The position numbers and the translations under genes were made by a program. From Macrostomum lignano (Eukaryota): a stretch of 64,000 nucleotides of DNA. A model generated the notes under the pieces. The model ran no database searches. It was given only the letters and a program-made list of their open reading frames with translations, and was not told the origin of the DNA. Location of the stretch: assembly GCA_002269645.1 (NCBI GenBank), contig NIVC01000221.1, positions 496,001 to 560,000 of the forward strand. Direction: 5' to 3'. Positions 8,050 to 59,882 of this stretch are shown here, in pieces (the stretch's first letter is position 1; each line of letters starts with the position of its first letter).

Positions 8050-8150
8050 CCAAACCCACTTAACCTCACAGCTTCATCCAGACTCACTCAGCCTCCACAG
8101 CTACATCCAGATCCTCTCAGTCTCACAGCTACATCCAGACCCACTCAGCC
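8050..8150 (-). repeat. Short array (3-4 units) of the 28-bp stop-codon minisatellite
   Basis: Degenerate CACAGCT(T/A)CATCCAGA(C/T)CC units directly downstream of the gene B stop. Confidence 0.85.
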
Positions 8151-9041
8151 TCACGGCTTCATCCAGACCCACTCAGCCTCGCTGGCCACCTCAGCGGGCA
8201 CAGCGGCGAACCTCAGCAGGCGGCACATGCGGCTCGAATGCACGAAGGCGCAGCCCTGACAGTCCGGGCTTCGCTGGCAGGCGGCAGCGCACTGGATGGC
8301 GCTCTTGGCAGAGACGCTGCTGTGGGTGATGGAGCTCAGTGAAGCTGAGATGCTCGGCATGGCAGTAGCTGGCAGCTTGGTCATTGCTTGGCCAGCTACA
8401 GTGTTTCATAGATATGGTGTATGATTTATTCAAGATAAATTTCTATCCATCACTTTTTCAAAATCTAAGCATTTGCCATAAAGTTTAAAAAAAGAATATC
8501 CTTAGCACTAGTCACGTCATCACTGTTGTTCTTCTTCGTGTGATAGTTTTTGAGGTTTTAACGTATTGTGTCCTCCATGAAAGAAGCAACATTCCTTTTA
8601 GAAAAAGTCCCTCTCACCATCAATATAAATATTTTCGTAGACGGAGTTCCTCATGTTTCCACCGCAGATTTGAGATGAGTTTCCCTTGCATTGACGCGAG
8701 CAGTCAGTAGCCGGGGCTGGACCGAACGAGCCGTAGCTGTTGCCACAGCAGCAGTATCCACCGAACCTCGCACCGAAGTACCGAAATCTCCCATAAGCGC
8801 AGATCTGGCTGCACAGCTGCAGCGTCATTGAAGCGCCTTGCGCAATTGATGGCCATCCTGACAAGATCGAATACGGACCGAATGTAGCGACTCCAACGAG
8901 GCCGGTCATGTCGGGGTCCCTTTTATCCACGTAGCAACCGATGTAGCGGAATGCCGTCGGATGAGGCGGCACAGAAGTCAAGCAGCTTCCGAACGCTGCC
9001 CACATCAGCAAGTAGCCTACAGAAAAGCTTTTTGAAAACAT
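8151..9041 (-). CDS. Secreted WSC + PAN/apple-like protein (gene B); exons 9041-8618 and 8395-8151
   Basis: Close paralog of gene A; phase-1 donor GATG|GTGAGA at 8617, acceptor TGTAG at 8397-8396; ends EAEWVWMKP*. Confidence 0.88.
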
Positions 9042-10416: not shown

Positions 10417-13400
10417 CAGGGAATCCTAAAGACCTGGAAGTGACACTGCAATATTCAGGCCCTCCAGGCCGGTCCAACCCAGGCCGATAACTTTTTTGGG
10501 AGAGAGGACAAAGAGGAAAAACATTTTCTTGCAGGGGCTAGTAAAGCGACTCGAAAAAGGGAGGAACGAAGGATAGAGAAGGGGTTGAGTGGACTGAGAG
10601 GATAGAGAGTGCAGAGAAAATCACTGTCCAAATAAAGACTGATTCAATATGAAAGGAGCGCATTGTACATGAGTGTACGAATTCTAAACATGATGACGCA
10701 CTGTTGAATGCACACATAACTCTTATGCCCCTATCGAGCTGCATTTAAGTAAGCTTTCGTGTGTTCATAATCAAACTGAATATCCTCTCATTTGCAAGCA
10801 TCATAATGGGTTACAAGTGCTGTGTATTTGGCTGCAAATCTGGCTACGCGTCGCAGAAGACAGAAAATGTGAGCTATTATGCTTTTCCTAAAGACACCAA
10901 CTTGCGACAGCGCTGGCTTCGCGCCATTCCAAATGCTGATTTAAATGCTTCCGAATTTCAACGCGTCTGCTCGAAGCATTTCACTGAATCAGATTTCGTG
11001 AAGAGTTCATCGGATGCGAATCAACGCCGGAAGAAACGACGCTTTTCTGCATCTGATTCAAAGCTGCATCTGATTCGACTCAAAGACGATGCAGTTCCAT
11101 CTCAATTTGAAGGCTTGCCGAAATACCTGAGCAAGCCAATTACGCAGGTAAGAAGTCAAAATGCCACTTCCGCTGCGCGCTTCATGGGAGACCAAGTCCG
11201 CTTAGATGAGGAAATCAGCGACTTTTTTGGCTCCGACGAGTTGTGCGATTTCAGCGATTTGATTCAAAAGCTGGAACAAGCGACGATTCCCTCTGGATTC
11301 GTCAGAAGTAAGGAAGCAGATTCAGTCTCGTTTTACTTGATAACAAGATCTGACTCGATTTCAGCTCCTTGTCTGCTTGCCTCTATGACAGTACTGCAGG
11401 ACCTTACCTTCCAAGTCTTCATCTCTGGCCTTTCTTGCTCTGATAGCATGTTTAAACACCTGCTCAAAGATGACTCGCTACATGTGCGTCAGCTTTCGAC
11501 TTTAGAAAACATGTTAGCCTTGATTAAGTCTTCGGCTACTGTTGCTGTTGACTCTCGCAATTCAAATGTGTCGTCTGCATTTGTTGAAGGCGTTTTAAAA
11601 GTCTACCTCGAATCTTTGAGTGATGATTCTGAACTGAGCAGCAATGTCAATTTCTTAGCTGAACAGTTCTCACTGATTCATCAAAAAGTATCTGCTCGAC
11701 GATATTCACCATCAACAACTGTGTTTGCGTACTTGATCTTTTCGACAAGTCGTGCCGCCTATAAGGCAATCCTAGAAAATGGTGCCCTCTGCCTACCATC
11801 TGTAAGAAGCCTTGTCAGGCTAAATGCTGTTCTTTCGAAGGAGCCTGGAGTGGTTGAGGAAATGTACCTGCAGTTGAGGACAGAGTCACTGTCTAGCAGA
11901 GAGAAGCACGTTGTGCTCATTATTGATGAGGTCGCAACAGCTAAAAGAATCGAGTTCAATTGCGACTCTGCTTACGGCCTTGCGAGTGACGGTAAAATGA
12001 CCTCCTCAATTCTTGCCTTTCTAATCAAGTCCGTCGGCGCATCCTATCAGGATGTTGTCGGTCTATTTCCTGTTAACTGCTTGACCGCTCTGGACTTATG
12101 CAACATGGCCAAGGAAGTGATTGCGGCTGTCACAAAGAGTGGATTTGAAATTGTTGCATTGTCCTGTGACAACTCCTCTGTCAACCGAAAGTTTTACTCA
12201 ATGTCAGCTGTACCTGAACATGGGCTGTCTATGCGACATCCATGTGACGATCAGAAAGAAATCTTCTTGCTGATGGACACTACTCACAACATTAAAAATG
12301 TGTATAACAACTTTCAGAGACGAGGTGTATTTCACTGTCCAGCGTTCGACAATTGCAGCAACTTTGTGGCAAGGTTCAGTGATGTTGAGGCTATTTTTGA
12401 AATTGAAAGAGGTCAGTCGTCAAAGATTGCCTTCCGTCTGTCGGAGAAGGTTTTACGTCCTCTTAATGTCGAGAGAACTAGTGCTTCACTGGCTGCAGCT
12501 GTGTTCGATGACACAACAGTTTCTGCACTCAGACTGTATTCAAGCACAAAGAGCACGGAGGTAGACACTTCAACGTTCAATAGCACAGCCAATTTCTTGT
12601 CCATGATCAGGAAGCTGTGGGCAATATTGAATGTTCGAACGCCATTCGCCGGTCAACAATTAAGAAGACCGGAAAGTGAGCCGCTAACTAATATGCAAGA
12701 CTGGCAGCTCCAGTACCTTGCTGACTTTGTTGGCTTCCTAAAGAAGTGGCGAGCGGTATCAACAGGCGCAGATGGTCTGACAAACGAGACATTTGGCAGC
12801 CTCATTCAAACATGCTCAGCCATTCCACTATTGTGTGCGAAACTTTTTTCTACTGGCCACTTTGACTACATTCTGCTGGGAAAGTTGTTGTCCGATCCTC
12901 TTGAAAGGCAGTTCGGAAAGTACAGGCAGATGTCCGGCGGATTGTATTTTATCAGTGCAAAGCAGGTCGTTCAGTCCGAGAATAAACTTAGAATGACTTC
13001 ATTGCTTAAGCACTCGGAAATAGACTTGCTACGCTTAAAGAAGTCTTTCATGAAGGATGTTGAGCAGGAAGACACTGACGTTAGTCTAAGAGCAGCAGAA
13101 ATCTTCGCTGATGTGTCAGATGAGCCATGCATGACCTTGCGCAGTAACGAGATGGGCTGTTTGAACGTGATGTTCTACATAGCAGGTTACCTTTCAAAGT
13201 CCATCAGCAAGGGATGTGCTGATTGTAGAGAATTTTTGGTGAGCGAAGACAAGGTCCCTCCAATGGAAGTGACTCTCGACGATGCTCCTAATCGTGATTT
13301 CCTAGTTCGACAGTCATCACGGGGAGGACTGTGCTGTCCATCGGATTCTGCTTTCGTTCTCTGCATGACAGCGTTCAATTCGTTTGAGCTCATCAAGGGC

Positions 13401-14112
13401 TCCAAGCAGCTGCTGCAGAAGCTTCTTAGCTTTAAACCGCATCAAACATTCGCATCAGTCGTGATAGTAAAAACTCAAAACTGTGCAAAATTTTCGGCTC
13501 GTCGCTTCCGCTGCTCAAATCATTCACTTAGACAAGTCATTCGGCAGTTTTCTTTCCGACTCCTAAACTGTTTTCTGAAAAACCTTTCTTCTGAAGCTAA
13601 CCGCCCATCCGTTGTAGGCAAACGGAAATCGGGAGAACAGAAGAGAACTGAGGACTGCTCTCGCAAACTGGCCAAATTGAATCCTTAGTACTCGTAATAG
13701 TATATTTTTATAAGCTTCATTGTTTTGACGATTCCGAGTTACTGCTAATTATTTTATTTACGAGTAAGCTCCCAGTTTATCCTGATGCATAATTACTGCC
13801 TTTCTGATGTCCGATGATCCTTCAACCCTGGTAAGTTTGATTAAAACCCTTTTTATGTTTATATAGCCTATGGTTTACCAGTTTTATGCATAATTGTTTC
13901 TTATAAAAGGCCTCATGAAACTTTCGTTTATTTCGTTACAATAAGGACTTTAAAAAATTCAGGGGATATGACTTTTCAGCGCTGTATCATCGAGTTGATA
14001 CTGAAAACCCTATAGAAAATGGCATGGGCTGCCTTGTTTGGTTAGGTAGGATCGGCCTGAGTTGGACCGCCCCCATTGGACAGTGTCACTTCCAGGTCTT
14101 TAGGATTCCCTG
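10417..14112 (+). mobile_element. Complete P-superfamily DNA transposon
   Basis: 32-bp perfect TIR CAGGGAATCCTAAAGACCTGGAAGTGACACTG at both ends, further subterminal match GGTCCAAC.CAGGCCGAT; 7-bp TSD GACAGAC (10410-10416, 14113-14119). Confidence 0.93.
10806..13688 (+). CDS. THAP-domain P-element-type transposase (960 aa, uninterrupted)
   Basis: THAP: MGYKCCVFGC...FPKD...RWL...VCSKHF...AVPSQF; core LIIDE, SCDNSSVN, DTTHNIKNVYNNF, SDPLERQFGKYRQMSG; C-terminal CxxC. Confidence 0.93.
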   Translation: MGYKCCVFGCKSGYASQKTENVSYYAFPKDTNLRQRWLRAIPNADLNASEFQRVCSKHFTESDFVKSSSDANQRRKKRRFSASDSKLHLIRLKDDAVPSQFEGLPKYLSKPITQVRSQNATSAARFMGDQVRLDEEISDFFGSDELCDFSDLIQKLEQATIPSGFVRSKEADSVSFYLITRSDSISAPCLLASMTVLQDLTFQVFISGLSCSDSMFKHLLKDDSLHVRQLSTLENMLALIKSSATVAVDSRNSNVSSAFVEGVLKVYLESLSDDSELSSNVNFLAEQFSLIHQKVSARRYSPSTTVFAYLIFSTSRAAYKAILENGALCLPSVRSLVRLNAVLSKEPGVVEEMYLQLRTESLSSREKHVVLIIDEVATAKRIEFNCDSAYGLASDGKMTSSILAFLIKSVGASYQDVVGLFPVNCLTALDLCNMAKEVIAAVTKSGFEIVALSCDNSSVNRKFYSMSAVPEHGLSMRHPCDDQKEIFLLMDTTHNIKNVYNNFQRRGVFHCPAFDNCSNFVARFSDVEAIFEIERGQSSKIAFRLSEKVLRPLNVERTSASLAAAVFDDTTVSALRLYSSTKSTEVDTSTFNSTANFLSMIRKLWAILNVRTPFAGQQLRRPESEPLTNMQDWQLQYLADFVGFLKKWRAVSTGADGLTNETFGSLIQTCSAIPLLCAKLFSTGHFDYILLGKLLSDPLERQFGKYRQMSGGLYFISAKQVVQSENKLRMTSLLKHSEIDLLRLKKSFMKDVEQEDTDVSLRAAEIFADVSDEPCMTLRSNEMGCLNVMFYIAGYLSKSISKGCADCREFLVSEDKVPPMEVTLDDAPNRDFLVRQSSRGGLCCPSDSAFVLCMTAFNSFELIKGSKQLLQKLLSFKPHQTFASVVIVKTQNCAKFSARRFRCSNHSLRQVIRQFSFRLLNCFLKNLSSEANRPSVVGKRKSGEQKRTEDCSRKLAKLNP

Positions 14113-15250: not shown

Positions 15251-15278
15251 AAATTGTGAGCATTGGGCATTCTTCTTA

Positions 15279-15610
15279 GAATCGTGAACAGGTATCCTTA
15301 GAATTGTGAACAGGTATTCTTAGAATCGTGAACAGGTATTCTTAGAATCGTGAACATGTATTCATAGAATCGTGAACGGGTATTCTTAGAATCGTGAACA
15401 GGTATTCCTAGAATCGTGAACAGGTATTCTTAGAATCGTGAACAGGTATTCTTAGAATCGTGAACGGGTATTCTTAGAATCGTGAACAGGTATTCCTAGA
15501 ATCGTGAACAGGTATTCTTAGAATCGTGAACAGGTATTCTTAGAAGCGTGAACAGGTATTCTTAGAAGCGTGAACAGGTATTCTTAGAATCGTGAACAGG
15601 TATTCTTAGA
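15279..15610 (+). repeat. 22-bp minisatellite AATCGTGAACAGGTATTCTTAG, about 15 units
   Basis: Head-to-tail units with few substitutions and no spacers. Confidence 0.95.
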
Positions 15611-15796
15611 AAGCTGGGAATTGCGTTGCAAATGCATTTGCTATCCAATGACAAGCATCCAGTGTGCATAGGAGCTGTATCCAATGACAGAGCAGCAGCA
15701 GGTATAGATATATTGATGACAATATCAATGATATCAACGCGAAGTCTGCATCAAAGTTGCAAAGCAGCGGCCACAATAAAAGTGAGCGGTAAGGAT

Positions 15797-16691
15797 ATGC
15801 CGTTAAAAACCCTCTTCGCTAGTTGTTTTCTGTTGTACACTTGTCTCTGGAGCTGCATGGCCTCCGCAACGCCGAGTCCGCTGGGTTTTCAGTACATCGG
15901 CTGCTATGTGGACGGCGATGACAGCAACCGAGACTTGCGAGGACTTCAAGGCATTGTCATGTTGGGTCCGTACGCCACGAAACCGACTGTGCCCGCCTTT
16001 GTGCAGAAGCCGGGCGAGATGACGCTGCAACTGTGCGCCGACATCTGCAATTACGGCCGATTCCGCTACTTCGGAGTTCAGTTTGCCGAGTACTGCTGCT
16101 GCGGGTCGGCCTACGGCTCTCTCGGAGCCGCTCCTGACTCCCAGTGCAACCTTCAATGCGGCGGGAATGCATCGCAGGTGTGCGGTGGTGCCAATAGAAA
16201 TTCAATCTATGAAATCACCTACCCGAAGTGTAAGCGAATGAAATGTTTATCAGTATGGGTAACTTTGGCGTCGTGCACATGATGGGTTCCGTTCGGGTGT
16301 GTATGTTGAAAGGAATAAGCTTGTAAGCTGAAGCGTTGAATGCAGGCCAGCACCAGGGGCTTTAGCACCAGGGGCTCAATATTTTATGCATAAGAACAGC
16401 AATTGGATTGCTAGCAAAATATCCAATCACCATTTATTCCAACCAGATGAAAACATTTCGAAGAAGCTGGCAGCTGCATCGATGCCCAACATGAGCAGCG
16501 CTCAGAGCTCCATCACTCACAGCAGTTTCCCAGCCAGAGTTGAATTTGAGTGCAGCGCCGCCTGCCACAGCAGCCCGAGCTGCCTGGGCAGCGCCTTCTC
16601 GCCATCAGGCCGCATGTGCCGCCTGCTGAAGCTCCACGCTGTGCCCGAGGAGTTGGCCAGCGAGTTCGAGTACGTCTGGATGAAGCCGTGA
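15797..16691 (+). CDS. Secreted WSC + PAN/apple-like protein (gene C); exons 15797-16229 and 16447-16691
   Basis: MPLKTLFASCFLLYTCLWS signal; YIGCYVD, LCADIC, EYCCCG, CGGANRNSIY; phase-1 donor T|GTAAG at 16230, acceptor CCAACCAG ending 16446; ends EYVWMKP*. Confidence 0.88.
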
Positions 16692-18238
16692 GGCTGAGGG
16701 CAGCCAGCAGCTGCCAGAATGGAATCAATTGCAATAACTAGCCAATTAGAACTCTGGGAATGTTGAACGAAGGCTGGTGGAATGGGTCTGAAGCATCCAT
16801 TCGTTATTTAATTGGAACTCAATGAAGCCAGAATCTATCTGGTGTCTTTACTGGTGTACTTTTACTGTCTTGTTTTCCGTTCTTAAGCCTGTCAGTCTAT
16901 CCTACTCACGAGACAGATGCTTATGAGTTTGAACTCAGAGTTGAGTACCAAGTTTCTTCGTTTAATCTGTTCGCTGTAGTTTACTTTGTCTTTTTAACAA
17001 CTTGATACTTGCAGCGTTGCGCTTGTTTTGATATAAACAGATCCACAATTAAAATGTTTTGTTTTAATTATCAACCAATATGAACTGCATTTATGGGCGA
17101 TTCTTACAGGAAACAAATTGCTCAATGAGTAGTCTCGGTGCGTGCCAGCCCTAGACTCCAATCATGGACAAGTCATCCATGATTCATACATGAACCCATC
17201 CATGTATCATCCCTGCTCATGTATGGCCCCATCCGTGATCATGTATGGTTCCATGTTGAATTCATGCATGGAAAGATGCCATCCATGTCCATGTATGAAA
17301 CTAAAAAGCGGTCAATATTCCTCATGACACTACTTTTGCAAGTAGAAATTACAACATGTGCTTAGAGCGCTATATATATTCCTAATTGTTGTCCTTGATC
17401 ATTCGTAATTATCATTATTCTTTAAAGAAGCTCTAAAAGAAACAAAAGCAAATCCAATGGAAATCATTTCATAGCAACGAAAGTGTGTTATATAGGTAAA
17501 TTTTATAGCCTTTATAGAAATGGGAAAACGACATGTATTTGAGAAAAATAAAATAAAAACTATTAAAAGAGAACATAAAAAAATGCACACAAAAAATTAA
17601 ACAGTTGATAGAAATGACAGCGAAACATAGGAGTCTTTTAGCATAAAAGACTGTGAAAAATGTAACGGAGCAATCAACGACAAAAAAGTGCTGACACACG
17701 AAAAGCATATGCATTGGAGTACAAATTTTCACTGGATAGAGCACATGTACATAAGACATGACGTAATTAAAAATAGACAATGAATAGAAATTAGAAGCAA
17801 GCATTGGAGCACAAAAGGAACAATATGAAAATGTACACAAAAAATTAACTGCAAAAACGTATGCTCGCATGAAACACAATGGGGGGCATGGAACGCACAT
17901 GTGTAGCTTTTGCAGGCATCGAACATAAAGCCCTAAATAATGGCGCATGATAAATTGAAAGTTGAACAAATATGAATGCACACGGATAAAATGACACATT
18001 TGGCGCACTTTTATCAAACAAATTCAAAGATTTACAAGTCAATTTTTCGCTATTGCTAACTGCCACTCTTGGCAACCAGATATTATGTCACATTCTGCAT
18101 TTGATAAAAAGCCGACCCGGGAATGCGCCACAAACTTTTTGACATTGATGTAGGTAATTTTTCGCCGAAATTAGCGGATAGCTGCTTTTAAAGCACGCCA
18201 AGCATATGTCAACTCGTAGTAAACAAAATAATTGCTTC

Positions 18239-25830: not shown

Positions 25831-26919
25831 CCTTGAGGTAAGAATAGTTTACTGTCTCCTGCTTAAACAATCTTGACTATACCGAAGGCCTTGGCTTCTC
25901 TCTTTTGTGTTTAGTCTCTCCGGTCTCAGGTGAAATTGAGCCCCATCGCTTAGGAAAATAGAGCATTTAAACAATTGTGAATTTCCATTTCGAGACCGAC
26001 ACTGAGCCCCGGCTAAACAAAACGCGGAGCAGACTCGCTCCTTCTTTTGTAAAATACTCAAAATCAGTAGCTAGGGGGGTTCGCTCTGCCCTCGCAGGGG
26101 CAGCAGAGTTGGGGGTTTTCGCATTGGTTAAGTTGGATGCGGATCTCTTCCCGTGGCCAGCTAATCCGCGGTAGCTTTTGATCGATCTGCTTGTCCTCAG
26201 ATCTTCTCTGGGTCGGGCTGGCTGATTGAAATGATGGAGTTTGCTCTTCTATTTGAAAATTTATACCCATTTGAAACTACTGAAATTAGCTAGTTGTAAA
26301 AATTACTGCAGCGAAGTCGGGCTGATGGCTCAAGAATCGCACTGAAGCCGGGACCCTGGTAGCTCCGGCCGGTGCTTCTAGCGCCAGCGCCGCCGCACCG
26401 GGGCCACAAGCCTGCATGCGCAACTGGGTGCTCCGCGGAGGCCCGACGTGCTCTCAACGGCGACGGCGACAACGAGAAGCTGCGGGCCGGCCACCTGCGG
26501 AGGGGAAGCCTAGGGAGGACGAGGCTGCTTTTGGGCCGAAAAGAGCCTCAGCGACCCCTGTTGGTGGATCCAACCCCCGCTGGTGAGCCGCCTAGCAAGC
26601 CTGCAACCAGCGCAGCCGGGCCTTCGGGAACCGCCGCCACCAACTACGCCTCAAAGGTCAAGCACCTACCGGCAATTATGTAACGAGGTGCACTCGAAGA
26701 TAGTTCATTAGTTTGCTTGTATTTCGGTTCCGTTCGTGGAGCGTATTGACCTAAGTATCGAGGTAAACTTTTAATTTTCTATCTTAAATGAAAAAGCACT
26801 AATTTGCTTAAAACCATGTTAAAGTGCATTGCGCACGTACTAAGCGTGTTACAGTAGCTCGTAGTACTCGTAGCAAGATAATGCAGAATCTATCTATCTA
26901 TCTTTCTAACTGTCTACTA

Positions 26920-27112
26920 TCTGGGAAGAGAGGAGAGGGGAGAGAGGAGAAGAGAGACAGGAGAGGAGAGAGAGGAGAGAGAGAAGAGAGAGAGGAGAGG
27001 AGAGAGAGGAGAGAGGAGAGAGGAGAGAGGAGAGAGGAGAGGAGAGAGAGGAGAGAGGAGAGAGGAGAAAGGAGAGAGGAGAGAGGAGAGAGGGGACAAG
27101 AGAGGAGAGGGT
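26920..27112. repeat. GA-rich simple repeat (GAGAG)n
   Basis: Purine-only tract. Confidence 0.95.
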
Positions 27113-30245: not shown

Positions 30246-31356
30246 CTAACCTTGGATGCCGTAGGCCATGAACTCGCAGATGGTGACGGGCTCTGCCGGA
30301 TTGCTGCGACTCAAGATGCGGATTTTCGAGCCGTGGGCGTTACAGATAAAGTTGGAAACAGTGAACGGAGTGCTGCGCCTCACCTGGTTACACACAGACC
30401 CGTCCACAAGAATGTCGAACTTGTTTAGTGCCTTAGCGCAGCAGTCCTGCCTGTTGTAGATGGTGACGAATGACACGAGAGATGGAGCCGTGAGACTGCC
30501 TTCCCACCACTCACTGAGGCCGTTGTGGGTGTGAGTGCAGGAGTTTTGATCATAAAATGGATTCGTGTTGCCGTCGATGGCGCGTCTGCACGACACCATC
30601 GATGAGCTTTCGCTGCAGCTGGCAATCGACAGTTTCTTAGGTGTAAAATCTGTAATTTAGGTACGTGCAAGCAGTTATTTGTTGTCGTTGCGCTCACGCG
30701 ATAATATATTTAATCAGACGCAACGCAGATGCGCACTGACGAAACCAGGAATTTTAATTGGAGGGGCGCAGTCCTAAGGTGCGCCAGCATTTGGTGTTCT
30801 GTTGGACACTGTCTCTTAATGGGCACCCCTGTCTCTTGGTGAGCTTCCAGCTGTCTCTTGACGGGTCTTATCTCAGGCATCAGGCATGTCAAAGATGGGA
30901 CAAAAGTTGCGCTCTTATGCATGTCATTCGTATAGCTTGTTGTCCTTTTTTAATAAGTTTCTGGAGAGCGCGATTTTTTCGGGTCACGGCCTCCCTTCTG
31001 CAAAAGCTACTGCGGATGCGCAATATGCAACTGCTATCAGGTGACTCACCTCGTACGAAGACGTCACACGTGCCGATGCTGTCCCAGGCGCTGGCATTGA
31101 AAAACGCCTTCAAGTCGAACAGCCGGCACGCGCCGAGCAGCCAGTAGAAGCCGAAACAGTCGGACCTGCGGCTGCACACAATGCCGCAGCCGATTTCGCT
31201 GTCTTCGGGCTGCACCAGAAGCTCCGACGGAGCGACAGCACTGCTCGTCCTGGCAGCGGAGAACTGCACACCCGAACTGACGACTTCCGCAGCCATTGCA
31301 GCTGTCAAGCAGACAGAAAGCACGACTTCAAAGGTGCATCTTCTCCGGTAAGTCAT
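30246..31356 (-). CDS. Secreted PAN/apple + F-type lectin (fucolectin-like) protein; exons 31356-31050 and 30649-30246
   Basis: Signal-like N-terminus; CGIVCSRRSDCFGF...CRL; phase-1 donor G|GTGAGT at 31049, acceptor TTACAG ending 30650, in frame; AIDGN, CTH-x26-RQDCC, ICEFMAYG. Confidence 0.85.
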
Positions 31357-32769: not shown

Positions 32770-33530
32770 ATGTCGCCAACAGTGCTGATTTTGACTGCTT
32801 TTACCGGCTGCGTTTCGGCGATGCTGACGCCCCAACTGCTGGGAGTTCGCTACCTTGGTTGCTATGCGGACGGAGATAACAGCAACCGAGACATGAGCGA
32901 ACTGCAAGGCATCGCCAGCTTTGGAACTTACAAAATCGATGTCCTGAACTTGGCCTTCGTAGTTAACGCAGAGATGACGCTAGAAATGTGCGCTCAAATC
33001 TGCGCCATCGGTCGATTTCAATTCTTCGGTGCCCAGCGAAGCAACTACTGCTGCTGCGGCTCAGCCTACGGCAGACTCGGTAGAGCGGCGGAGAGCGACT
33101 GCTCAACGGCTTGCGCAGGAAACTCGTCTCAGAAGTGCGGAGGAATGGGCAAAAACTCTGTCTATGAAATATTCTACTCTCACGGTATGCAAACCGAAGT
33201 CTTGATGTTCTATAATTTAAAGGCTAATTTGTGACGCAAAGTTATTGAAATGAATATTTATTCCTCTACGATTACCCACTAACAGTCAAGGACACCATGA
33301 CGCAGCTGCAGGTCGCAGCGATTCCCAGCATCTCAAGCTTTCCGAATTCAACAACTCACCGCAGTGCTGCTGCCAGAAGCCCTACCAAGTGCGCCATCAA
33401 CTGCCAAACCAGCCTGGACTGTCAGGGCTGCGCCTTTGAGACTTCGAGCCGCATGTGCCGCCTGCTGAGATTCGTCGGTGTGCCCGCCGAGGTGGCCAGC
33501 GAGGCTGAGTGGGTCTGGATGAAGCTGTGA
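32770..33530 (+). CDS. Secreted WSC + PAN/apple-like protein (gene D); exons 32770-33184 and 33286-33530
   Basis: MSPTVLILTAFTGCVSA signal; YLGCYAD, MCAQIC, NYCCCG, KCGG..KNSVY; phase-1 intron 33185-33285 (GTATGC...CTAACAG); ends EAEWVWMKL*. Confidence 0.9.
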
Positions 33531-34062
33531 GGCTGAGAGGGTTTGGATGAAGCTGAGGCTGAGTGGTCTGGATGAAGCTGTGAGGCTGAGTGGGTCTGGA
33601 TGAAGCTGTGAGGCTGAGTGGGTCGGGATGAAGCTGTGATGCTAAGTGGGTCTGGGTGAAGCTGTGAGGCTGAGTGGGTCTGGATGAAGCTGTGATGCTA
33701 AGTGGGTCTGGGTGAAGCTGTGAGGCTGAGTGGGTCTGGATGAAGCTGTGATGCTAAGTGGGTCTGGGTGAAGCTGTGAGGCTGAGTGGGTCTGGCTGGA
33801 TGAAGCTGAGGCTGAGTGGGTCTGGGTGAAGCTGTGAGGCTGAGTGGGTCTGGCTGGATGAAGCTGAGGCTGAGTGGGTCTGGCTGGATGAAGCTGAGGC
33901 TGAGTGGGTCTGGATGAAGCTGTGAGGCTGAGTGGGTCTGGATGGATGAAGCTGAGGCTGAGTGGGTCTGGCTGGATGAAGCTGAGGCTGAGTGGTTCTG
34001 GATGAAGCTGTGAGGTTGAGTGGGTCTTGATGAAGCTGTGAAGCTGGGTAGGTGTGGATGAA
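33501..34062 (+). repeat. 28-bp stop-codon minisatellite, about 19 units, the first overlapping the CDS
   Basis: GAGGCTGAGTGGGTCTGGATGAAGCTGT units with 26- to 32-bp variants. Confidence 0.95.
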
Positions 34063-34619
34063 ATTCTACCGAACGTTTAAATAATTAACTCAAAAAGTAG
34101 TAGTTCTTCTAATCTTCAAAAATAGTTTCATGTTGTATCAATATTACATGCTATCGTATCACTAGCAGCGAGCTACAAACGGAATATGCAACTAATTCAC
34201 TCATTAATGCATAATGTACTTTAATATGGTTTTGAGCCATTTCAGTACTTTTTTCTTCAAGATAAACATTTTAGTCTTGACTCTTAACTTGACCAGCAGA
34301 ACCAAAACAATAACCAAACAAATAAAATAGATGAAGATGATAATATTTTCTAAGAGATGTCAACTTCCGTGAACTTTCGGTTTTCAGATTTTGCGTCTTA
34401 AAATCCTTTCTGTTAGAAAATTTCGATAGCTTCTCGGATTAAAAACTGTTCAAGTTAATTGGCAGTTTGTTCAGCACCCATTTTTAACTGATTTGAGTTC
34501 ACTCTACTGCGAGTTTTACTACGGCTTCAAATGGTATTGCTAATCCAATAATTAACTAAACTAGACTAACAAATCATTAACTGGTCTGCCAAACATTGAG
34601 GACTGCGAGACAAAAGATC

Positions 34620-35120: not shown

Positions 35121-35777
35121 ACCACAAAAAGCAAAGTAACACATTGATGATATTTTATGAGGGCGAAATTCTTGAGAAGTGTCAGCAGTTGAAATCAGAA
35201 AGCCACCATTCCCTCCCTGATACCCCAGCTCTCTACAGATCGTATATTGCTCAAGCCAATTAAAAAAACAGTTCTGAACCAAATGCAAACTAATTTAAAG
35301 TTCGTAACAGAAAGACGTGCCGCAAATTAAATTTAAAATGAAACGCCGAAGGAATGATTTTCTAACGTTTTTTCTTTTCTAACGAAAATAAGAAACATAT
35401 CTGAGAGAACTGACCAGAAAAAGAATTATAAACATCAGACCACTGCTTCTGACTTTGTCTCTTACATTTAGTTTGCTTTGGAAAGTGCAATCTTGACTAT
35501 CCCCACTCAGCTTCACAGCTTCATTCAGACAAACTCTGTCTCAAATTTTTTCATTTTCAAGGACATGGGGAGACCGCCTAATGAAGAGTAGCTATGAAAA
35601 AATCTATGAAGGGAACTCTTACAGTTTTTGTAAAAAAGTTTAGCATTTATAAAAAGATACCACTTTGAACATGGGTGCGCCAGCGGGGCCTCAGATCCTT
35701 CAGATCCTGAAGTAGTGGTCTAGATCAGCTGAAATTAATAAGAAAACAGTGACAGAAGCACTTGTATAGTAAGAATC

Positions 35778-36014
<237 letters not shown>

Positions 36015-36349: not shown

Positions 36350-37790
36350 CCCTGCACCTTCCCTGCATCTTAGACACTTCTCCTTCCCTGCATCTTAGAC
36401 ACTGCTCCCTTCCCTGCATCTTAGACACTTCTCCTTCCCTGCATCTTAGACATTGCTCCCTTCCCTGCAACTTAGACACTGCTCCCTTCCCTGCATCTTA
36501 GACACTGCTCCCTTCCCTGCAACTTAGACACTGCTCCCTTCCCTGCATCTCAGACACTACTCCCTTCCCTGCATCTTAGACACTTCTCCTTCCCTGTATC
36601 TCCGACACTTCTCCTTCCCTGCATCTCAGACACTGCTCCTTCCCTGCATCTTAGACACTTCTCCTTCCCTGCATCTCAGACACTGCTCCCTTCCCTGCAT
36701 CTCAGACACTGCTCCCTACCTGCATCTCAGACGCTGCTCCCTTCCCTGCATCTCAGACACTGCTCCCTACCTGCATCTCAGTCACTGCTCCCTACCTGCA
36801 TGTCAGTCACTGCTCCATCCCTGCATCTCAGTCACTGCTCCCTCCCTGCATCTCAGTCACTGCTCCCTACCTGCATCTCAGTCACTTCTCCCTCCCTGCA
36901 TCTCAGTCACTGCTCCCTACCTGCATCTCAGACACTGCTCCCAACCTGCATCTTAGACACTGCTCCCTACCTGCATCTAAGACACTGCTCCCTACCTGCA
37001 TCTTAGACACTGCTCCCTACCTGCATCTCAGACACTGCTATCTCAGCCACTGCTCCCTTCCCTGCATCTCAGACACTGCTCCCTACCTGCATCTCAGACA
37101 CTGCTCCCTACCTGCATCTTAGACATTGCTCCCTTCCCTGCATCCTAGACACTGCTCCCTTCCCTGCATCTTAGACACTGCTCCCTACCTGCATCTTAGA
37201 CACTGCTCCCTACCTGCATCTCAGACACTGCTCCCTACCTGCATCTCAGACACTGCTCCCTACCTGCATCTCAGACACTGCTCCCTTCCCTGCATCTCAG
37301 ACACTGCTCCCTTCCTGCATCTCAGACGCTGCTCCCTTCCCTGCATCTCAGACACTGCTCCCTACCTGCATCTCAGACACTGCTCCCTACCTGCATCTCA
37401 GACACTGCTCCCTTCCCTGCATCTCAGACACTGCTCCCTACCTGCATCTCAGACACTGCTCCCTAGCATCTCAGACACTGCTCCCTTCCTGCATCTCAGA
37501 CACTGCTCCCTACCTGCATCTCAGACACTGCTCCCTTCCTGCATCTCAGACACTGCTCCCTACCTGCATCTCAGACACTGCTCCCTTCCTGCATCTCAGA
37601 CACTGCTCCCTACCTGCATCTCAGACACTGCTCCCTAGCATCTCAGACACTGCTCCCTTCCTGCATCTCAGACACTGCTCCCTACCTGCATCTCAGACAC
37701 TGCTCCCTAGCATCTCAGACACTGCTCCCTAGCATCTCAGACACTGCTCCCTAGCATCTCAGACACTGCTCTTTCCCTGCATCTCCGACA
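36350..37790. repeat. Minisatellite of about 25 bp CCTGCATCTCAGACACTGCTCCCTA (22- to 26-bp variants)
   Basis: About 1.4 kb of tandem units with blocks of variant types. Confidence 0.97.
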
Positions 37791-38061
37791 CTGCTACTCC
37801 ATACCAAAAAGCCATAAGGCTGCTAAGAATTCAGCCAATTCTGAAATCTGAGGCGTATTCAAACAGATATTTGTACCACGCCTGATGCAAAATTGAATAT
37901 TTAGAGCTTGTTTGTTTCTTTGAGACGATATATTCCATTAACATACTAGGGTTGAAGTTACATATCATAGTTAAAAAAATCAGTGACACAACAAGGCAAA
38001 ATAGTTAGGTTGTCAATCTTTAGGTGGAGATTTGCTGATAACAGCCGTTTGTTCCGGGCAC

Positions 38062-38590
38062 TCAGCCGAGCACGAAGAGAGTCCAGTCGGGTCCGGTCAG
38101 GCTGCCTGGCGGGTAGGCGAACGCCAGCAGGTGGCCGGCGAGCAGCCGCTGGAGAAAACAGCGGCCTGGCAGTCGGCTTTGGCGCTGCACTGGGCCAGGC
38201 AGTCCATGACGGATGTGGTAGGAGCCGGCCAGGACGAGGTCTTGCTGGTCACCACAGTGAGGATCAGATTCAGATTATGTTTTAGATAATTTTTTATATT
38301 CGTGACACCTAATTACACGTAGGTGCAAAATTATTCGTTTTCAACTTACTCGGATAGGTCAAAGCGAACACGGAGTTGATGGCGAAACCTCCGCAAGTCT
38401 GCAGCGAGTTTCCAGCGCACTGCTTGTTGAAGTGGCTCTCGCCAAGCTTTCCATGCAATCCGTAGCTTGTGCCGCAGAAGCAGAACTTCGTGCTTTGCAC
38501 TCCAAAGTAGGGGAAGCCGCCCAGAGAGCAGAGGTCGCTGCAGAAGTTGAGCGACATGTTTTCAGGGTTCTTTATTAATCCGATATTCTA
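38062..38590 (-). pseudogene. Diverged, damaged WSC-PAN paralog (gene E)
   Basis: MSLNFCSDLC..FPYFGVQ..FCFCG...CAGNSLQTCGGFAINSVF, phase-1 donor A|GTAAG at 38349; downstream MDCLAQCSAKADCQAAVF then frameshift to HLLAF; one WSC Cys changed to Phe; 5' part not found. Confidence 0.7.
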
Positions 38591-44924: not shown

Positions 44925-46079
44925 TTACTCGTTAGTAAAGCAACAATTTTTGTGCCTCTGCTGCATTCGGATGTCAAGTTCCGCACAAGTTCTCCAACTG
45001 CAGGAGCTCAGTGACTGTAAGAGCCTCCTTGGCGACGGCATAGCAGATGAAGCGACCCCGAAGGGCGTGAGATGAACTGCTATGATAGCCCAGACGCAGG
45101 CAAAGCGGAGCTCCAGAGTAAGTGCTGGACTGAGGTTAGGAGTTTGCAGAAACGCGCCATCTTTGTAGAAGTTGCTCAGGGTGTTGCCAACAAACACGGC
45201 TGCCACAGAAGCCGGTTGTAAACTATTATCGTTCAAAAACACATTGCTGATTGATTCGCGAAGCAACTGGTAATTGTTTTGGTTTGCGGCAGCTGGGAAG
45301 GCGTGCACAACCCGAAGTCGTCCTCCGTTGTCGCTGAACTCTCCCCGATTAAGAGCCGACGTGGAACAGTCATGAAAGTAGTGATAGGTCTGGTGGTTTG
45401 GGTCGTTTCGCATGAGTCTCACGTAGAACGTGAACGATTTCGGGTGACTCAGATAAGTAGACGCCAGGTTGTTACCATCGGTGTCAACTTCGATATAGTC
45501 GTTATTGTTTCCACCAGGGAAGGTGACTCCCTCGCTGTTTTGACTGACGGCACCGTGGGGACTGGCGGCGTACTTTGCAGGATTGACAAGGTTTGTGTAG
45601 CCCTGCCTGAAGTCGAATAGGATGACCAGCTTTGAGACCAGAATGCCCAGGCCCTGGACTGCCGCATTGATTGTTGTGGCCGCAGATTGACTCAGAGTTG
45701 TCGTCACGGGGGCTACCGTTGTTTCAGTTGTTATCAGTGCATCTCCGTTGTTGGAAACTTTGACAAGGACTTTACAAACGGTTGGAATGGACGAATTCGA
45801 CGTTGAGATAAGTTCACTAGCTTGTTGGCTGTTTCCTAAATAGCAAATGCCGTCTTCACTTCGGTAGATGACAGAACAGTTGCTATCGAGTCCACACACC
45901 AAAGCACATTCTTCTACCGATCGAAATTCTTTGACCTTTTTTAGCATAGCAATGGTTGAATTTCCCGGGCAAGTTGGCACGATTTTGAATCGAACCCGAT
46001 TACTCTCCGAGCAGTTGCTGGCCGAAGTTTCGGCAGTCAACCAGAACAGAATCAGCAGCAGTATGAGATTAGTAGCCAT
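44925..46079 (-). CDS. Secreted PAN + Thr-rich linker + LamG/ConA-like protein, copy 1, frameshifted near the 3' end
   Basis: Signal MATNLILLLILFWLTAETSA; ECALVCGLDSNCSVIY...CYL; KLVILFDFRQGYTNLV shared with copy 2; the paralog-matching C-terminus is in another frame ending at 44974. Confidence 0.75.
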   Translation of the reverse strand: MATNLILLLILFWLTAETSASNCSESNRVRFKIVPTCPGNSTIAMLKKVKEFRSVEECALVCGLDSNCSVIYRSEDGICYLGNSQQASELISTSNSSIPTVCKVLVKVSNNGDALITTETTVAPVTTTLSQSAATTINAAVQGLGILVSKLVILFDFRQGYTNLVNPAKYAASPHGAVSQNSEGVTFPGGNNNDYIEVDTDGNNLASTYLSHPKSFTFYVRLMRNDPNHQTYHYFHDCSTSALNRGEFSDNGGRLRVVHAFPAAANQNNYQLLRESISNVFLNDNSLQPASVAAVFVGNTLSNFYKDGAFLQTPNLSPALTLELRFACVWAIIAVHLTPFGVASSAMPSPRRLLQSLSSCSWRTCAELDIRMQQRHKNCCFTNE

Positions 46080-51097: not shown

Positions 51098-54000
51098 CTA
51101 ACCTGCAGATATTGGACACAACTTTGTTATTGGTCTCGTCATTGTGCGATCACCGACTCTGATTGAGGCGACTCTCACGTGCCCGTCAGGACCGCGCATG
51201 ACGTCCAGCACGCGAGCCAGCGGCCAGTGACCCCGAGGCGAGTCCGGGCTCACCAGCAGCGCTACGTCTCCGGGTTGTAAGTCAGGCAGCTCGCGGCGCC
51301 ACTTGCTCCGCGGTGCGAGTCCCGGCAGCCACTCGCGCAACCACCGGCGCCAGATCTGCGACACCAGCTACTGAACGTGACGCCATCTTCTTGAAGGGCT
51401 GCGGGCGATGGCAGCGTCGACCTCCGGTGCAAACATCCCGCCGACTTGCCCGATGAGGAAGTGATTCGGCGTCAGTGGCACATCATCATCAACACTCGGA
51501 TGCGCCGTCTGGTACGTCAGCGGCCTTGAATTCAGAAGTGCCTCCGCTCCAGCAAACGCGCTTAGCAGCTCCTCATCCGTGACATCCGTCTCTCTCAGAA
51601 TTGACTGCCAAAGCTCCTGCATCAGAATCTTCGCCTGCACGACAAACGGGGAGATCAGTCCAAGTGGATCAAAGACACTCGCTAGCTTTGTTAGCAGACT
51701 CCTTCTTGTGGTCACCTGATACGACTCGTTTTCGTCTTTAAAAGTAAATTCGTCCTGCTCACTCTGCCACGTGATACGCAGCGTCTTGGTACTCGGTAGT
51801 TCTTTGCTATCCAAGGTAACTTCTGCTGCGCGGTCCTCAGGTGGGATTCTATCGAGCACAGCTCTCGAGTTCGAGACCCATTTGCGCGCGTGCATGCCGG
51901 CGCGCCTCCAGAGCTCACTGAGTTGATCGTACAGCCTGCAGGCGGCTGCCTCGGTGGGCGCAGAGTCCAGGCTGTCATCCATATAGGTAGAGTGCAGTAC
52001 TATCTCGGCCGCCTCTGGAAGCTCACCTTTTAACTTTTCAGCATGGCAGCGGGTAACGAACTGTGCCAAGAAAGGAGAACTGGTGACGCCGAACACCACT
52101 CTGTTGAACTCGTAGACATTCGGCTGCTTTGAAGGATCGGCGTCCCGCCAAAGGAAACTGTGCAGCGGCCTGTCCTTCGGGTCCATCTCGATCTGGAGAT
52201 ACATTTCCGCTACGTCGCATGCGATCGCAATCGGGTGTCGGCGGAACCGAAGCAGCACGTCAACCAAATCTCTCTGCAGTTTGGGGCCCTGGAGGATCTG
52301 GTCGTTCAATCTGGCAGCCGATGCATCAAAGACTATCCGCACTTTTGTTGTAGCCTTGTCTGGCCGCAGCACTGGGAAGTGCGGCAGGAAACAGCGGCCT
52401 TCAGTCTCAGCTTGCGACACTTTTCGGATATAACCTTGCTGTTCATACTTTTCAAGGATTTCCTGATACTGCTTGCAGACGTGCATATCCTTAATCAGCC
52501 GCTGTTCGGTGTTCTTTAGTCGCTTCAAGGCCATTGAGAAAGTGCCTGCTGGAGCCAGCCGATCCTTTTTCCATGGAATCCCGATCTGGTAACGGCCCTT
52601 ACTTTAGCAACGACTTGGCTTGCTGGACGGCTCTCTCCTCATCAGCGGTCAGCGGACTTCGATTGGCACCTTCTGAGACGTTCTCGATCTCCCAAAACTG
52701 CCGCAGGATCTTAGCCACCTGACCAGATTCGGAATCGCAGCTGAAGAAAGTGGCAGCGAAATGGGCGTTCTGCATCTCAGAATTGTCCTGCTCTGTGCGA
52801 CCGATGCACGTCCAACCCAGGGGAGTCAGGCGCGCCTTTGGCTCCAGCGGCTGTCCGACGATTTCCTTGAGAGACATGTGAAGGTCCGGGTGATCAGCAC
52901 GAATCAGCAAGTCCACTACTGCAGGCTCACACAGCTTCGGAAACGGCACATTTCTCAGATGAGGCCACTGCTGCGCTTCTTCGTGCCAGTCGACGCCTTT
53001 GAGGGACCCGGTCACGTGATCAGCGGTGAAGGCGACGATCATTGAGCTGGTCTGACCATCCAGACTTTCCAAGCTAAAGCAGACTGGGGCTGTCATGAAG
53101 GTCTCTTTTTGGCCATTGATGACTCCGACTTTCACCTTTTCGAGCGCTCCATGCACTCCAAGCGCTTCTGCTATCCCGATGTTGACGTAGCTCCTGGTAC
53201 TGGCATCGTCGAGCAAGGCGTTCACCTTCAGCTTCCGGGACCCGTTCCGTATGACTACAGGCACCGTTCGTAACGAGATTGCCATTTCACCAGCCGACAG
53301 AAGCGTCACCGGTCCAGTCTTTCCTGAACTGGAAGCGGATTTAGCGTCCTTGGATGCAGTCTGCTTCGCTTCACCAGACTTGGCCAACACTTTTTCTGCA
53401 TGAAGCAGGCGATGATGGAACTTTATGCAGCTGTTGATGCCGCACCGACGACCGGTTGCCAAGGCTGCCAAGATGTCCTTGGCCCAAGCACCGGAAACAA
53501 CACTTCGAGCTCTGCGCCACGTCCCAGCGTTTTTCCACCGGAAGCTCCTTGAACTCACTGCAGGACCACAGCTCGTGATCACCTTGACAAACAATGCAAA
53601 TCTTTCGCTGTACCTTCTTGTCACTGTCCGTATAGTAGTAACGAAAGTCTTTGGTCACTGCTCTCGCTTTTGACGCTCCTGCTGCATGGTGGCAACGCCC
53701 TGCACAATCTCTGACGCTTCAGTCTGAAACTCTGCTTCTTGCAGCACCCAAATTCTCAGATTTCTAACACTCTCCGGCTTCCGCTGCTCAAAGATCCACC
53801 TCCGGTAGCTGGCAACCATCTGCTCAAGCAACTTTTTCTGCAGCCTCACATACAACATCCCATCTTGAAGCTCTGCCTCTTTACCCGCGTCCTCAAGGTT
53901 AACGACAGCCACATCAAGTAGATAAGCAAAGCTTTTCAGATCCTTGGCGTTTCCATTTCGCACGATCGGGAAGCTGTCCAGCTCTTCCAAGTGCAGAGCA

Positions 54001-54773
54001 AGTTGCCTACGCTGTCCACCAAATTCTCTCTCTAATCTCTCTTTTGCAGCTTCAAATGCCGCAGCAGAGTGTCCTAGATGTTCTATAACCTTCAAAGCTT
54101 CACCGCTGAGGTACTGCCTAAGCTGCAGCAACTTGAATTCTGGTGTTGCAGGGGCGCTGTCGATGCACGCAACAAAGGCTGCCTTCCAGTTTTCATACTT
54201 CTGCTTTTCTCCACTAAACGTTGGGATTTCAACACGCTTCAGCATCTTCCACAAATCCTTTGAAAGCTCCTTCGGGTTGGATCCTTTGCTGGACGCAGCA
54301 CTGCCAGAAAGTTTGTGTAACTCACCAGCTGCTTCTTCTTGGTCAACCGCAGCGTTCTCACCGCTTGAGCTCGCGGCAGGAGCTTCTTGGGCGCGCAGCA
54401 ATCTCCGGTTTCTGGCGCTTTCGACGCGCTGCGTGGTAGCTTGGTAGTCGCGCTCCGTCTTCTCCATTTCGTCTAGTAGGCGCTGTCGCCTCTCGTTGTC
54501 CTTGGCGTCGGCGTAGCCTTGATGCAGTTCTTCCTGGATGGCGCTGACCAGATCTTGCAGGTCTGACAGAGCGTCACAGGCAACTTGCACTTCGTCATCA
54601 GAGGCGTGCGTCTTTAACAGCCAAGACAGCTTGTTTTTGCAACGAGTGAACGTTGCTTTTTTTCGGGATTTCTTGAAGCGCAGCTTCTCTAAACGTAGGG
54701 CGCCGGCATCGTCTTGGGCTTCCTGCTGTTGTTCATTGGCGTCGGCACTGTCCATCCTGGTCCTTCGTTTCAC
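51098..54773 (-). mobile_element. BEL/Pao retrotransposon internal region (gag, protease, RT, integrase tail), internally deleted
   Basis: Gag IPTFSG...YENWKAAF, zinc knuckles, protease ALLDDAS, RT FLPHFPV, VFDASA, FGVTSSPF, YMDD; LWQS fused to the integrase tail; WPLARV...GPDGHVRV. Confidence 0.93.
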
Positions 54774-58766: not shown

Positions 58767-59882
58767 TCAAGTGCAGAATGCCTCCAGCTGCCTCAGTTCG
58801 CTCTCCGTCAGCGCCTCTTTGGCAATCGCGTAGCATATGAAAGTGCCCTTGAATGCGGAGGACTCGTGGCTGTACCCAAGACGCAGGCACAGAGGGGGCC
58901 CGGAATATGCGCCGGAATCCTTGTGGACTTGTAGAATTTTGCCGTCGTGATACAGCTTGGCTTTACTGCTACCAGTGAACACGGCACCAATGGATAGAAA
59001 TTGGTCGGTGCCACCTTCGCTAATGACTTCCCCATCTGACTCGATATTCAATTTAGTTTCAGCGAGACCAGACACTGCCGGAAATGAGTGCTCGATTTCA
59101 AGGTTGCCGTTATTGATACCAAACACACCATGGGCACTTGTGCTTGAGCAGTCGTAGAGATAGTGATATGTCTGCTCATCTTGATGGGGTTCTCTCTTGA
59201 TTCGAGCATAGATAGTAAAGTTGCTGTCCTGTCCGAGAAATTCGGGCCCAAGTGAGTTGGATTCAGTGTCCACTTCGATGTAATTAACAGAACTGTCCGA
59301 TAAAAACCTGGCGCCCGTGGAGTCGCGGGTTACGGAGCCACTAGGAGAAGCGGCGTATTTTTTTGAGTCGACGAGGTTTGTGTATCCCTGCCTGAAGTCG
59401 AGCAGGATGACCAGCTTCTGAGCCAAAGTGACATTGAGTCCAATATTAATCGTATTCGTTTCAGGAGTAGTATCAGTCTGAGTGGATGTTTCTAAAGTTG
59501 AATTTTCCGTAATTTCTGTAGTGGGTGATTCGGTAGTCGCAGTGGTGGCATCCCCCGCATAGACGAACAGCATTGGCCATTTCACGTGACTCTCGCACAA
59601 GTTGTACTCCGATTCCTTCACTGGAGAGAAGAATTCATTGAGCTGATTCGAAGTTCCAAGAAAGCAGCTGGACGAAGAGTTTCGAAACAGCACGGTACAG
59701 TTGCGCCGAATCGCGCACTCGACGAAGCAGGCCCTGATGTCTGCAGCTCCATCCATTTTGTCCAGCTCATTGAGCTTTGAGGCAATTGGGCAAAGTGCTG
59801 ACTTTGTGAAGTTCACTAGCAGAGCTTCGGAGCAGTTGAATAGTTCAAGAGCAAACAAACATAGCAACAGCAAAGTTCTCAT
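58767..59882 (-). CDS. Secreted PAN + Thr/Glu-rich linker + LamG/ConA-like protein, copy 2 (intact, intronless, 371 aa)
   Basis: ATG 59882 MRTLLLLCLFALELFNCSEA; ACFVECAIRRNCTVLF...CFL; TTATTESPTTE linker; beta-rich C-terminal domain paralogous to copy 1. Confidence 0.8.
   Translation of the reverse strand: MRTLLLLCLFALELFNCSEALLVNFTKSALCPIASKLNELDKMDGAADIRACFVECAIRRNCTVLFRNSSSSCFLGTSNQLNEFFSPVKESEYNLCESHVKWPMLFVYAGDATTATTESPTTEITENSTLETSTQTDTTPETNTINIGLNVTLAQKLVILLDFRQGYTNLVDSKKYAASPSGSVTRDSTGARFLSDSSVNYIEVDTESNSLGPEFLGQDSNFTIYARIKREPHQDEQTYHYLYDCSSTSAHGVFGINNGNLEIEHSFPAVSGLAETKLNIESDGEVISEGGTDQFLSIGAVFTGSSKAKLYHDGKILQVHKDSGAYSGPPLCLRLGYSHESSAFKGTFICYAIAKEALTESELRQLEAFCT

Follow-up and report, generated by a model that had tools for sequence, protein, structure and literature searches.

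A 28-bp flatworm minisatellite probably derived from the last codons and stop of WSC-PAN genes, with independent array turnover among paralogs

Behind gene D of the 64,000-nucleotide stretch of DNA analysed here (the window), a tandem array of 28-bp units begins inside the reading frame and runs through the stop codon into the downstream DNA, and arrays of the same unit, of very different length, stand at the 3' ends of its paralogs. The locus thus raises the questions of whether a minisatellite arose from the last codons of a gene or the gene acquired its last codons from a satellite, whether the differences in copy number among the paralogs are stages of one expansion, and whether the arrays do anything for the genes that carry them.

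The window, which is eukaryotic, contains four intact two-exon WSC+PAN genes (A, B, C and D) that encode proteins of ~220 aa; exon 1 specifies a signal peptide and the WSC domain, and exon 2 a PAN-like domain. According to the gene models, genes A (exons 4373-3950 and 3649-3405) and B (9041-8618 and 8395-8151) lie on the minus strand, and genes C (about 15797-16229 and 16447-16691, with the start codon picked arbitrarily) and D lie on the plus strand. Gene D is composed of an exon for the signal peptide and WSC domain (32770-33184; Pfam WSC E = 1.8e-11) and an exon for the PAN-like domain, the tail and the TGA (33286-33530), and the terminal exon is 245 nt long in all four genes. All four score above the Pfam cut-off of 27.8 bits for WSC (PF01822; 44.6-52.7 bits), and for PAN (PF00024; cut-off 21.4 bits) A (29.3) and B (26.1) score above the cut-off and D (17.8) and C (15.5) below it. 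A WSC-PAN remnant on the minus strand (59-2322) had been called a pseudogene in the sequence-only reading, rightly so: its first PAN cysteine codon has changed from TGC to a premature TGA, a deletion of ~66 nt adjoins its array, and its exon 1 is interrupted by an insertion (the remnant of the PAN exon lies at 507-636, minus strand). Gene E (38063-38590, minus strand) is a truncated and frameshifted relic of a distant WSC+PAN paralog that ends in ...PDWTLFVLG and a stop, has no array and served as the outgroup for the comparison of C-terminal tails; the DNA of its PAN exon is 87% identical to M. lignano counterparts.

None of the window proteins is itself in the database; the closest entries are Macrostomum lignano WSC-domain proteins with ~50-60% identity, and these stop at the identical position, with SEAEWVWMKL or near variants of it. 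Exact-protein look-ups returned nothing recorded for the M. lignano homologs present only in UniRef or for one window open reading frame, scans of metagenomes by protein alignment and with an exact 25-mer spanning the unit junction gave no match, and in the literature we found no account of this WSC+PAN family or of its 28-bp repeat in Macrostomum.

The array of gene D was detected by TRF at 33501-34062 with a period of 28, 19.8 copies, 86% matches, a score of 740 and the consensus GAGGCTGAGTGGGTCTGGATGAAGCTGT, together with an additional higher-order period of 88 bp. The unit contains 13 G and 3 C, that is, it has a G-rich strand asymmetry. At three or fewer mismatches the 28-mer occurs 29 times in the window and not once in 100 dinucleotide-preserving shuffles, and a gapped scan whose threshold was set from shuffles (null maximum 16) detects unit-like sequence no more than six times in the window, namely at the 3' ends of five WSC-PAN genes or relics and in one orphan of ~1.5 units (35501-35542, minus strand) that adjoins no WSC or PAN exon and is nearest to variants of the pseudogene array. 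Beyond the window, in 62 kb of M. lignano DNA that was scanned (for a total of ~126 kb of flatworm DNA, with one locus of the subfamily outside the window), the unit was seen only at the stop codon of P0173 in locus L003.

The unit had been proposed to be the codons for E-A-E-W-V-W-M-K-L plus the first base of TGA, and the gene models of D, A and B bear this out exactly and in frame. Unit 1 of each of these genes consists of the last nine codons (EAEWVWMKL, ending in ...KP in B) and the T of TGA, and the remaining GA of the stop codon forms the first bases of the unit that follows. When the arrays are dissected unit by unit, gene D has 20 units head-to-tail (33501-34067, plus strand): the coding, or founder, unit (33501-33528, an exact 28-mer) and 19 non-coding units (33529-34067), with five exact canonical units including the coding one, one 26-nt, one 27-nt and five 30-nt units, and a decayed last unit with seven mismatches. 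The 26-nt and 30-nt units lack GT and hence the stop, in agreement with the earlier observation of stop-less variants. Gene B has five units (8040-8180, minus strand), the coding unit (8153-8180, EAEWVWMKP) and four extra ones, the last of which (8040-8067) is decayed, with six mismatches. Gene A (3381-3434, minus strand) has the coding unit (3407-3434) and one decayed 26-nt unit (3381-3406), which is a genuine copy, its anchored score of 16 being reached by none of 5000 null positions. In gene C (16662-16698, plus strand), a diverged coding unit (GAGTTCGAGTACGTCTGGATGAAGCCGT, encoding EFEYVWMKP, plus T) is followed by GAGGCTGAG only. The pseudogene has 16 units, all of 28 nt (59-506, minus strand), which alternate with a 56-bp period and include 112 bp that are duplicated exactly, units 6-9 being equal to units 10-13; its array is the most decayed, with 2.94 mismatches per unit (43 transitions and 4 transversions) and no canonical unit, as against five in D and seven in P0173. 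These counts (1 + 19 in D, 16 in the pseudogene, 1 + 4 in B, 1 + one decayed in A and the 9-mer alone in C) match those of the sequence-only reading. TRF gives 16.1 copies for the pseudogene and 4.7 for gene B. With its 28-bp unit, head-to-tail arrangement, internal variants and higher-order repeats, the feature is a minisatellite. Many of the non-coding units contain stop codons when read in their own frame, and there is therefore no coding constraint on them.

How old the array is can be judged from P0173 (BOX15_Mlig013640g1), an NCBI-annotated M. lignano gene of the subfamily, which lies at locus L003 on contig NIVC01000038.1, is 49-56% identical to the proteins of genes A-D and ends in SETEWVWMKL and a stop. 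Its last nine codons run straight into an array (L003 10721-11219; TRF, 17.8 copies, 91% matches) in which all units are 28 nt, GAGGCTGAG and GAGACTTAG units alternate with a 56-bp period, and the consensus is the same as that of the window arrays at 28 of 28 positions. Because an array with an identical consensus stands behind a gene whose product is only 49-56% identical, the array must either predate the paralogs or be continually renewed, and, to judge from these sequences, either the array itself or its continual regeneration appears to span paralogs that are ~50% identical. Among the window genes, A and B have homologous 3' flanks for about 300 nt, and D shares a conserved block with them past its array (34209-34266, plus strand; putative 3'UTR), as seen by blastn and MAFFT. 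In the alignment, the decayed terminal units of D and B pair with the lone second unit of A, and A, B, D and the pseudogene have a G24A change in common in their last units. Given this pairing and the homology of the flanks, at least two full units were already present in the gene from which these four descend.

This bears directly on the proposal that the paralogs represent successive stages of expansion from a 9-bp seed, which is not supported. In that proposal, a single unit was followed in the ancestor by nine bases that happened to repeat the EAE codons, each paralog slipped separately, and C, A, B and D record successive stages of births that were independent of one another. Gene C looks like such a starting point, being a unit plus GAGGCTGAG with nothing unit-like further on (a second decayed unit is not significant, P = 0.24), and published models would permit a birth of this kind: Haber and Louis have minisatellites born by slippage between direct repeats of 5-10 bp, and Taylor and Breden have mispairing at noncontiguous repeats, with an incomplete terminal unit as the predicted outcome (PMC3389668). 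The 9 nt past the last unit of the pseudogene (CACGCTGAT) also match the 9-mer at six of nine positions, with an estimated P of ~0.01 for this one site, uncorrected for the four sites. However, the second unit of A is full length, lines up with the last units of B and D, and has homologous flank beyond it. Moreover, no array, whether of A, B, D, the pseudogene or P0173, stops at a bare 9-nt partial unit; in the first four, a full-length decayed unit comes last and non-unit DNA lies beyond it, and the array of P0173 closes with a 23-nt partial unit. Nor does gene C hold a seed at present, since its own codons (GAGTTCGAG) match the post-stop GAGGCTGAG at only six of nine positions and the 9-bp direct repeat is gone; in the other genes, the 9-mer after the stop is simply the start of unit 2. 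In addition, the transversion G3T is found in D, the pseudogene and P0173, and G17T in D and P0173, so that window arrays and the P0173 array have both in common, which speaks against separate births, although these shared variants could either be ancestral or have arisen more than once.

The position of gene C in the family points the same way. Neighbour-joining trees place C inside the clade, where it groups with P0173 and its 18 units, whether the tail columns are kept or left out; resolution within the clade is weak, and the topology inside it shifts once the tail columns are removed. Since C is nested and not basal, the copy-number series is not a time series, and we read gene C as at least as likely to be a truncated relic as a pre-expansion seed. 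Taken together, we regard separate births from a 9-bp seed as unlikely. The copy numbers at the several loci are outcomes independent of one another, and the birth event predates all of the available sequences, from which its mechanism is not recoverable.

Each of the arrays carries variants of its own: 30-nt units with a CTGG insertion and GATGCTAAG...GGGTG units in D, ATGTAGCTGT in B, GAGCGGATCTGG and GAAGCTGAG in the pseudogene and GAGACTTAG in P0173. The higher-order repeats are likewise specific to the locus, measuring 88 bp in D and 56 bp in P0173, with one of 56 bp and one of 112 bp in the pseudogene, and the possession by each array of its own higher-order period indicates local duplication of one to four units. 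Units 2 and 4 of gene B are each one base off the canonical unit although the 3' flanks of A and B are only 65% identical, and turnover of the array therefore outpaces the divergence of the paralogs. Nucleotide identity in exon 2 climbs toward the 3' end (from 0.33 to 1.00 between A and D); synonymous sites, however, are highly identical along the whole exon in every pair, and gene conversion is therefore inseparable here from codon bias and protein constraint.

Despite this turnover, the array consensus is identical at all 28 positions in D, B, the pseudogene and P0173 and equals the coding tail. This is likely to come about because young units are copied from canonical ones beside a founder that is held in place by selection on the protein, and we infer that the coding founder unit anchors the consensus of the array; this is the weakest step of the explanation. 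It fits with this step that the most decayed array is that of the pseudogene, which has no such anchor. The coding units of B (...CCGT) and P0173 (GAGACT...), on the other hand, differ from the neighbouring array unit, which argues against frequent exchange between founder and array and weakens the idea of anchoring. Alternatively, selection acting on the repeat itself could have kept the consensus identical while the flanks diverged by 35% or to the point where they no longer align.

Such selection would be expected if the array were a 3'UTR element in which an RNA motif binds a regulator (an RNA-binding protein or a small RNA) and copy number tunes the stability, localisation or translation of the mRNA. 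The unchanging 28-nt consensus among genes whose proteins are only ~50% identical speaks for such an element, as does the placement of the arrays upstream of the first poly(A) hexamers: in D, B and P0173 these hexamers occur only downstream of the arrays, the first ones 86-355 nt past the array (in gene D, the first AATAAA is at 34321), so that the arrays of the intact genes probably lie inside the mature 3'UTR. What argues against it is that the number of extra units in intact paralogs ranges from 0 to 19, A having only a decayed copy and C none, that the dead gene keeps an array of similar length (16 units), and that units vary freely, indels included. Rfam gave no match to the array at E <= 1, and 280 nt of array RNA did not fold better than shuffles (z = -0.89). 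We consider a selected regulatory element of this kind improbable.

A related proposal is that the array is a maintained store of C-terminus cassettes, a dosage-tuning 3'UTR element, or both. If this were true, in-register unequal exchange would carry array units into the coding position, residues of the tail would be swapped, stop-less 30-nt units would add 10-residue EAEWVWLDEA modules, and selection would account for the identity of the consensus across deeply diverged paralogs. ETE, WIW, WFW, VKL and DAE are indeed found both in the coding tails of paralogs and in array units. Among inferred single-base coding variants, 6 of 10 are shared with the arrays where 3.6 are expected (P = 0.09), and with transitions only the overlap gives P = 0.88; sharing above chance is thus not supported. 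We give this proposal, too, a small chance of being right. With no Rfam match or structure, with in-frame stops, with anything from 0 to 19 extra units and with an array persisting in a dead gene, we favour reading the array as a neutral by-product, a putative 3'UTR minisatellite for which a function is not needed.

The direction of descent, from gene tail to satellite, had been proposed in the sequence-only reading, and it is sustained by the wider family. Profile and word-index searches, the former covering 1.84 billion representatives, yielded ~25 further WSC+PAN proteins of ~210 aa, all of those looked up being from M. lignano. The family proteins all end at one alignment column with a [DE]-[WFY]-x-x-x-x tail (related tails are SEAQWVWVKL, GESAWIWMRN, GPDWTLYQRD, DGDYFVRG and DGEFYIRC), and about 30 family members, some of them from subfamilies without the repeat DNA, share the conserved tail and the position of the stop. 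As negative controls we used the M. lignano loci L001 and L002, which belong to a distant subfamily and were reached through P0159, the M. lignano counterpart of gene E; after the stop of gene E and of L001 and L002, the sequence is ordinary, with no unit-like DNA. Because the tail is conserved family-wide, even where there is no repeat DNA, the tail is old and the satellite is derived from it. The PAN_1 match ends at position 57 of the 76 positions of the profile and leaves 15 residues for the last 19 positions, which places the tail within the expected extent of the PAN domain. An AlphaFold2 prediction of protein D from an eight-sequence alignment, run to see if the tail forms a strand in the PAN fold, had a mean pLDDT of 38.9, and the model is unusable.

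The opposite direction, in which a 28-bp satellite already existed and the genes came to read into it for their last nine codons and stop, could draw on the orphan of ~1.5 units that lies away from any WSC-PAN exon and on the ~126 kb extent of the inspected DNA. Capture of this kind sits badly with a tail and stop position that are conserved in subfamilies lacking unit-like DNA, with a tail that falls within the expected extent of the PAN domain, and with a first unit that is exactly in frame in every gene, and we judge it very improbable. That the arrays are collapsed or expanded mis-assemblies is more improbable still, given that they occur at four separate window loci with different variant patterns, are short (54-567 bp) and have a matching counterpart at the P0173 locus (NIVC01000038.1, assembly GCA_002269645.1).

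We therefore think it likely that the arrays form a minisatellite of single origin, derived from the coding tail, in which each array has turned over independently and for which no function is needed. Its history may have been as follows. The minisatellite would have originated once, in the ancestor of the 'EAEWVWMKL' subfamily, when the last 28 nt of the reading frame were duplicated in tandem. Unit 1 would have stayed the coding tail, and 28-nt junctions would have rebuilt TGA; with a TGA rebuilt at each such junction, translation ends after unit 1 and the remainder is non-coding. After the paralogs had separated, each array would have expanded, contracted and partly homogenised separately, by replication slippage or by unequal exchange of one to four units, with 2, 5, 16, 18 and 20 units as the outcomes, and gene C would probably have lost its array almost entirely. 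The unit farthest to the 3' side would then be the oldest as well as the most decayed.

Several known kinds of tandem repeat offer a comparison. The human SLC6A3/DAT1 gene has a 40-bp VNTR in its 3'UTR. Repeats of this type resemble the flatworm arrays in having head-to-tail units of 10-100 bp, variant units, differences in copy number and strand asymmetry. In the flatworm, however, the progenitor can be identified (the gene's own last nine codons and the first base of the stop), the array has been inherited across a paralog family, and the copy-number differences are known between paralogs rather than between alleles; 3'UTR minisatellites and VNTRs have been surveyed genome-wide in humans (PMC8096271). 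With the seeded-birth models of Haber and Louis and of Taylor and Breden, the locus shares the arrangement of gene C, where a 9-nt repeat of the unit start comes directly after the unit, but the flatworm arrays lack the predicted terminal incomplete unit equal to the short repeat. Coding tandem repeats, such as those of mucins, yeast adhesins and PRDM9 zinc-finger arrays (reviewed in PMC6162428), are likewise built of codons, and the 30-nt EAEWVWLDEA variants would be in frame and stop-less; in contrast to them, no repeat past unit 1 is translated in the genes seen, and because a TGA closes unit 1 in A, B, D and P0173 this is not a coding repeat. Finally, satellites in concerted evolution have the same homogeneous, locus-specific interior, decayed edges and higher-order repeats, whereas the consensuses of the flatworm arrays have not diverged between loci and all equal the coding tail.

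By unit size, G-richness, variants, decayed edges and putative 3'UTR location, this is a typical minisatellite and not a new kind of element. It stands out in that its progenitor can still be seen, lying across the stop codon, in that it has been inherited throughout a family of paralogs, and in that its consensus has not changed. The birth of minisatellites is hard to study since the progenitor is usually unknown, and here the progenitor is explicit. With at least five paralogs and a pseudogene, extra units that number from 0 to 19, and a decayed terminal unit of ancestral age to serve as landmark, the family is a convenient natural series in which to follow array turnover against paralog divergence, and it allows a test of whether a constrained founder unit can fix the consensus of a non-coding array.

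Fragments of the tandem array and of the 3′ UTR of the WSC+PAN genes are also found apart from any intact gene copy. About one and a half copies of the 28-nt unit (which corresponds to the last nine codons and the T of the stop codon) lie on the minus strand at 35501-35542 with no WSC or PAN exon nearby, 1.4 kb past the end of the array behind the intact paralog D and in the opposite orientation to it. Their nearest relatives are variants from the array of the WSC-PAN pseudogene, and these orphan units may be all that is left of a lost paralog, or else a fragment that was captured. The block common to the 3′ UTRs of the intact paralogs A, B, and D likewise has an extra, gene-less copy at 26640-26860 (minus strand), together with 26927-27109, and a (CCTCTCT)n microsatellite precedes it in the place where array and gene would be expected. 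This copy represents either another decayed paralog or a block that is part of a mobile sequence.

Gene E (38063-38590, minus strand) consists of a truncated WSC exon and a PAN exon whose reading frame has to be corrected by 1 nt, and its DNA is 87% identical to two M. lignano genes (L001/L002) of a distant subfamily; it is therefore probably a pseudogene of that subfamily. Exon 1 of the array-bearing pseudogene is split by an insertion of ∼1.2 kb (918-2119) that contains a tRNA-like stretch as well as ORFs that overlap in sense and antisense orientation.

Two mobile elements were noted in the window. One is a THAP/P-element-like transposase ORF (10761-13688, plus strand; 975 aa) that looks intact and has THAP, TNP-like RNase H, and GTP-binding domains; the other, a retroelement of Pao/BEL type (51368-54773, minus strand), has gag-like, protease, and RT ORFs. 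Further tandem arrays comprise 15 copies of a 22-bp unit immediately upstream of the intact paralog C (15273-15611), (CTA)79 (35777-36014), a 25/50-bp satellite of ∼29-58 copies (36352-37795), and 11 copies of a 42-bp unit (97% identity; 63540-64000) running past the window end. On the minus strand, 1.4 kb upstream of D, a gene at 30246-31356 combines a cysteine-rich N-terminal exon with an F5/8 type C (galactose-binding-like) domain. Two paralogous single-exon ORFs on the minus strand (384 aa, 44925-46079; 381 aa, 58767-59912) both begin with a signal-peptide-like start and gave no Pfam match.

Across D's array (33501-34067), the junctions of the 28-nt units read CT/GTGAGG, a 5′ splice-donor-like hexamer present in ∼13 copies in the putative 3′ UTR; judged by their sequence, these junctions are candidate 5′ splice donors. 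The chimeric M. lignano gene model P0039 departs from the tail at ...EAEWFWMK/H. When exon 2 DNA is compared among the deeply diverged paralogs A (3405-3649), B (8151-8395), and D (33286-33530), identity rises from ∼0.35-0.5 at the 5′ end to 0.97-1.00 over the last 10 codons, a gradient that either ectopic conversion close to the arrays or constraint alone could produce.
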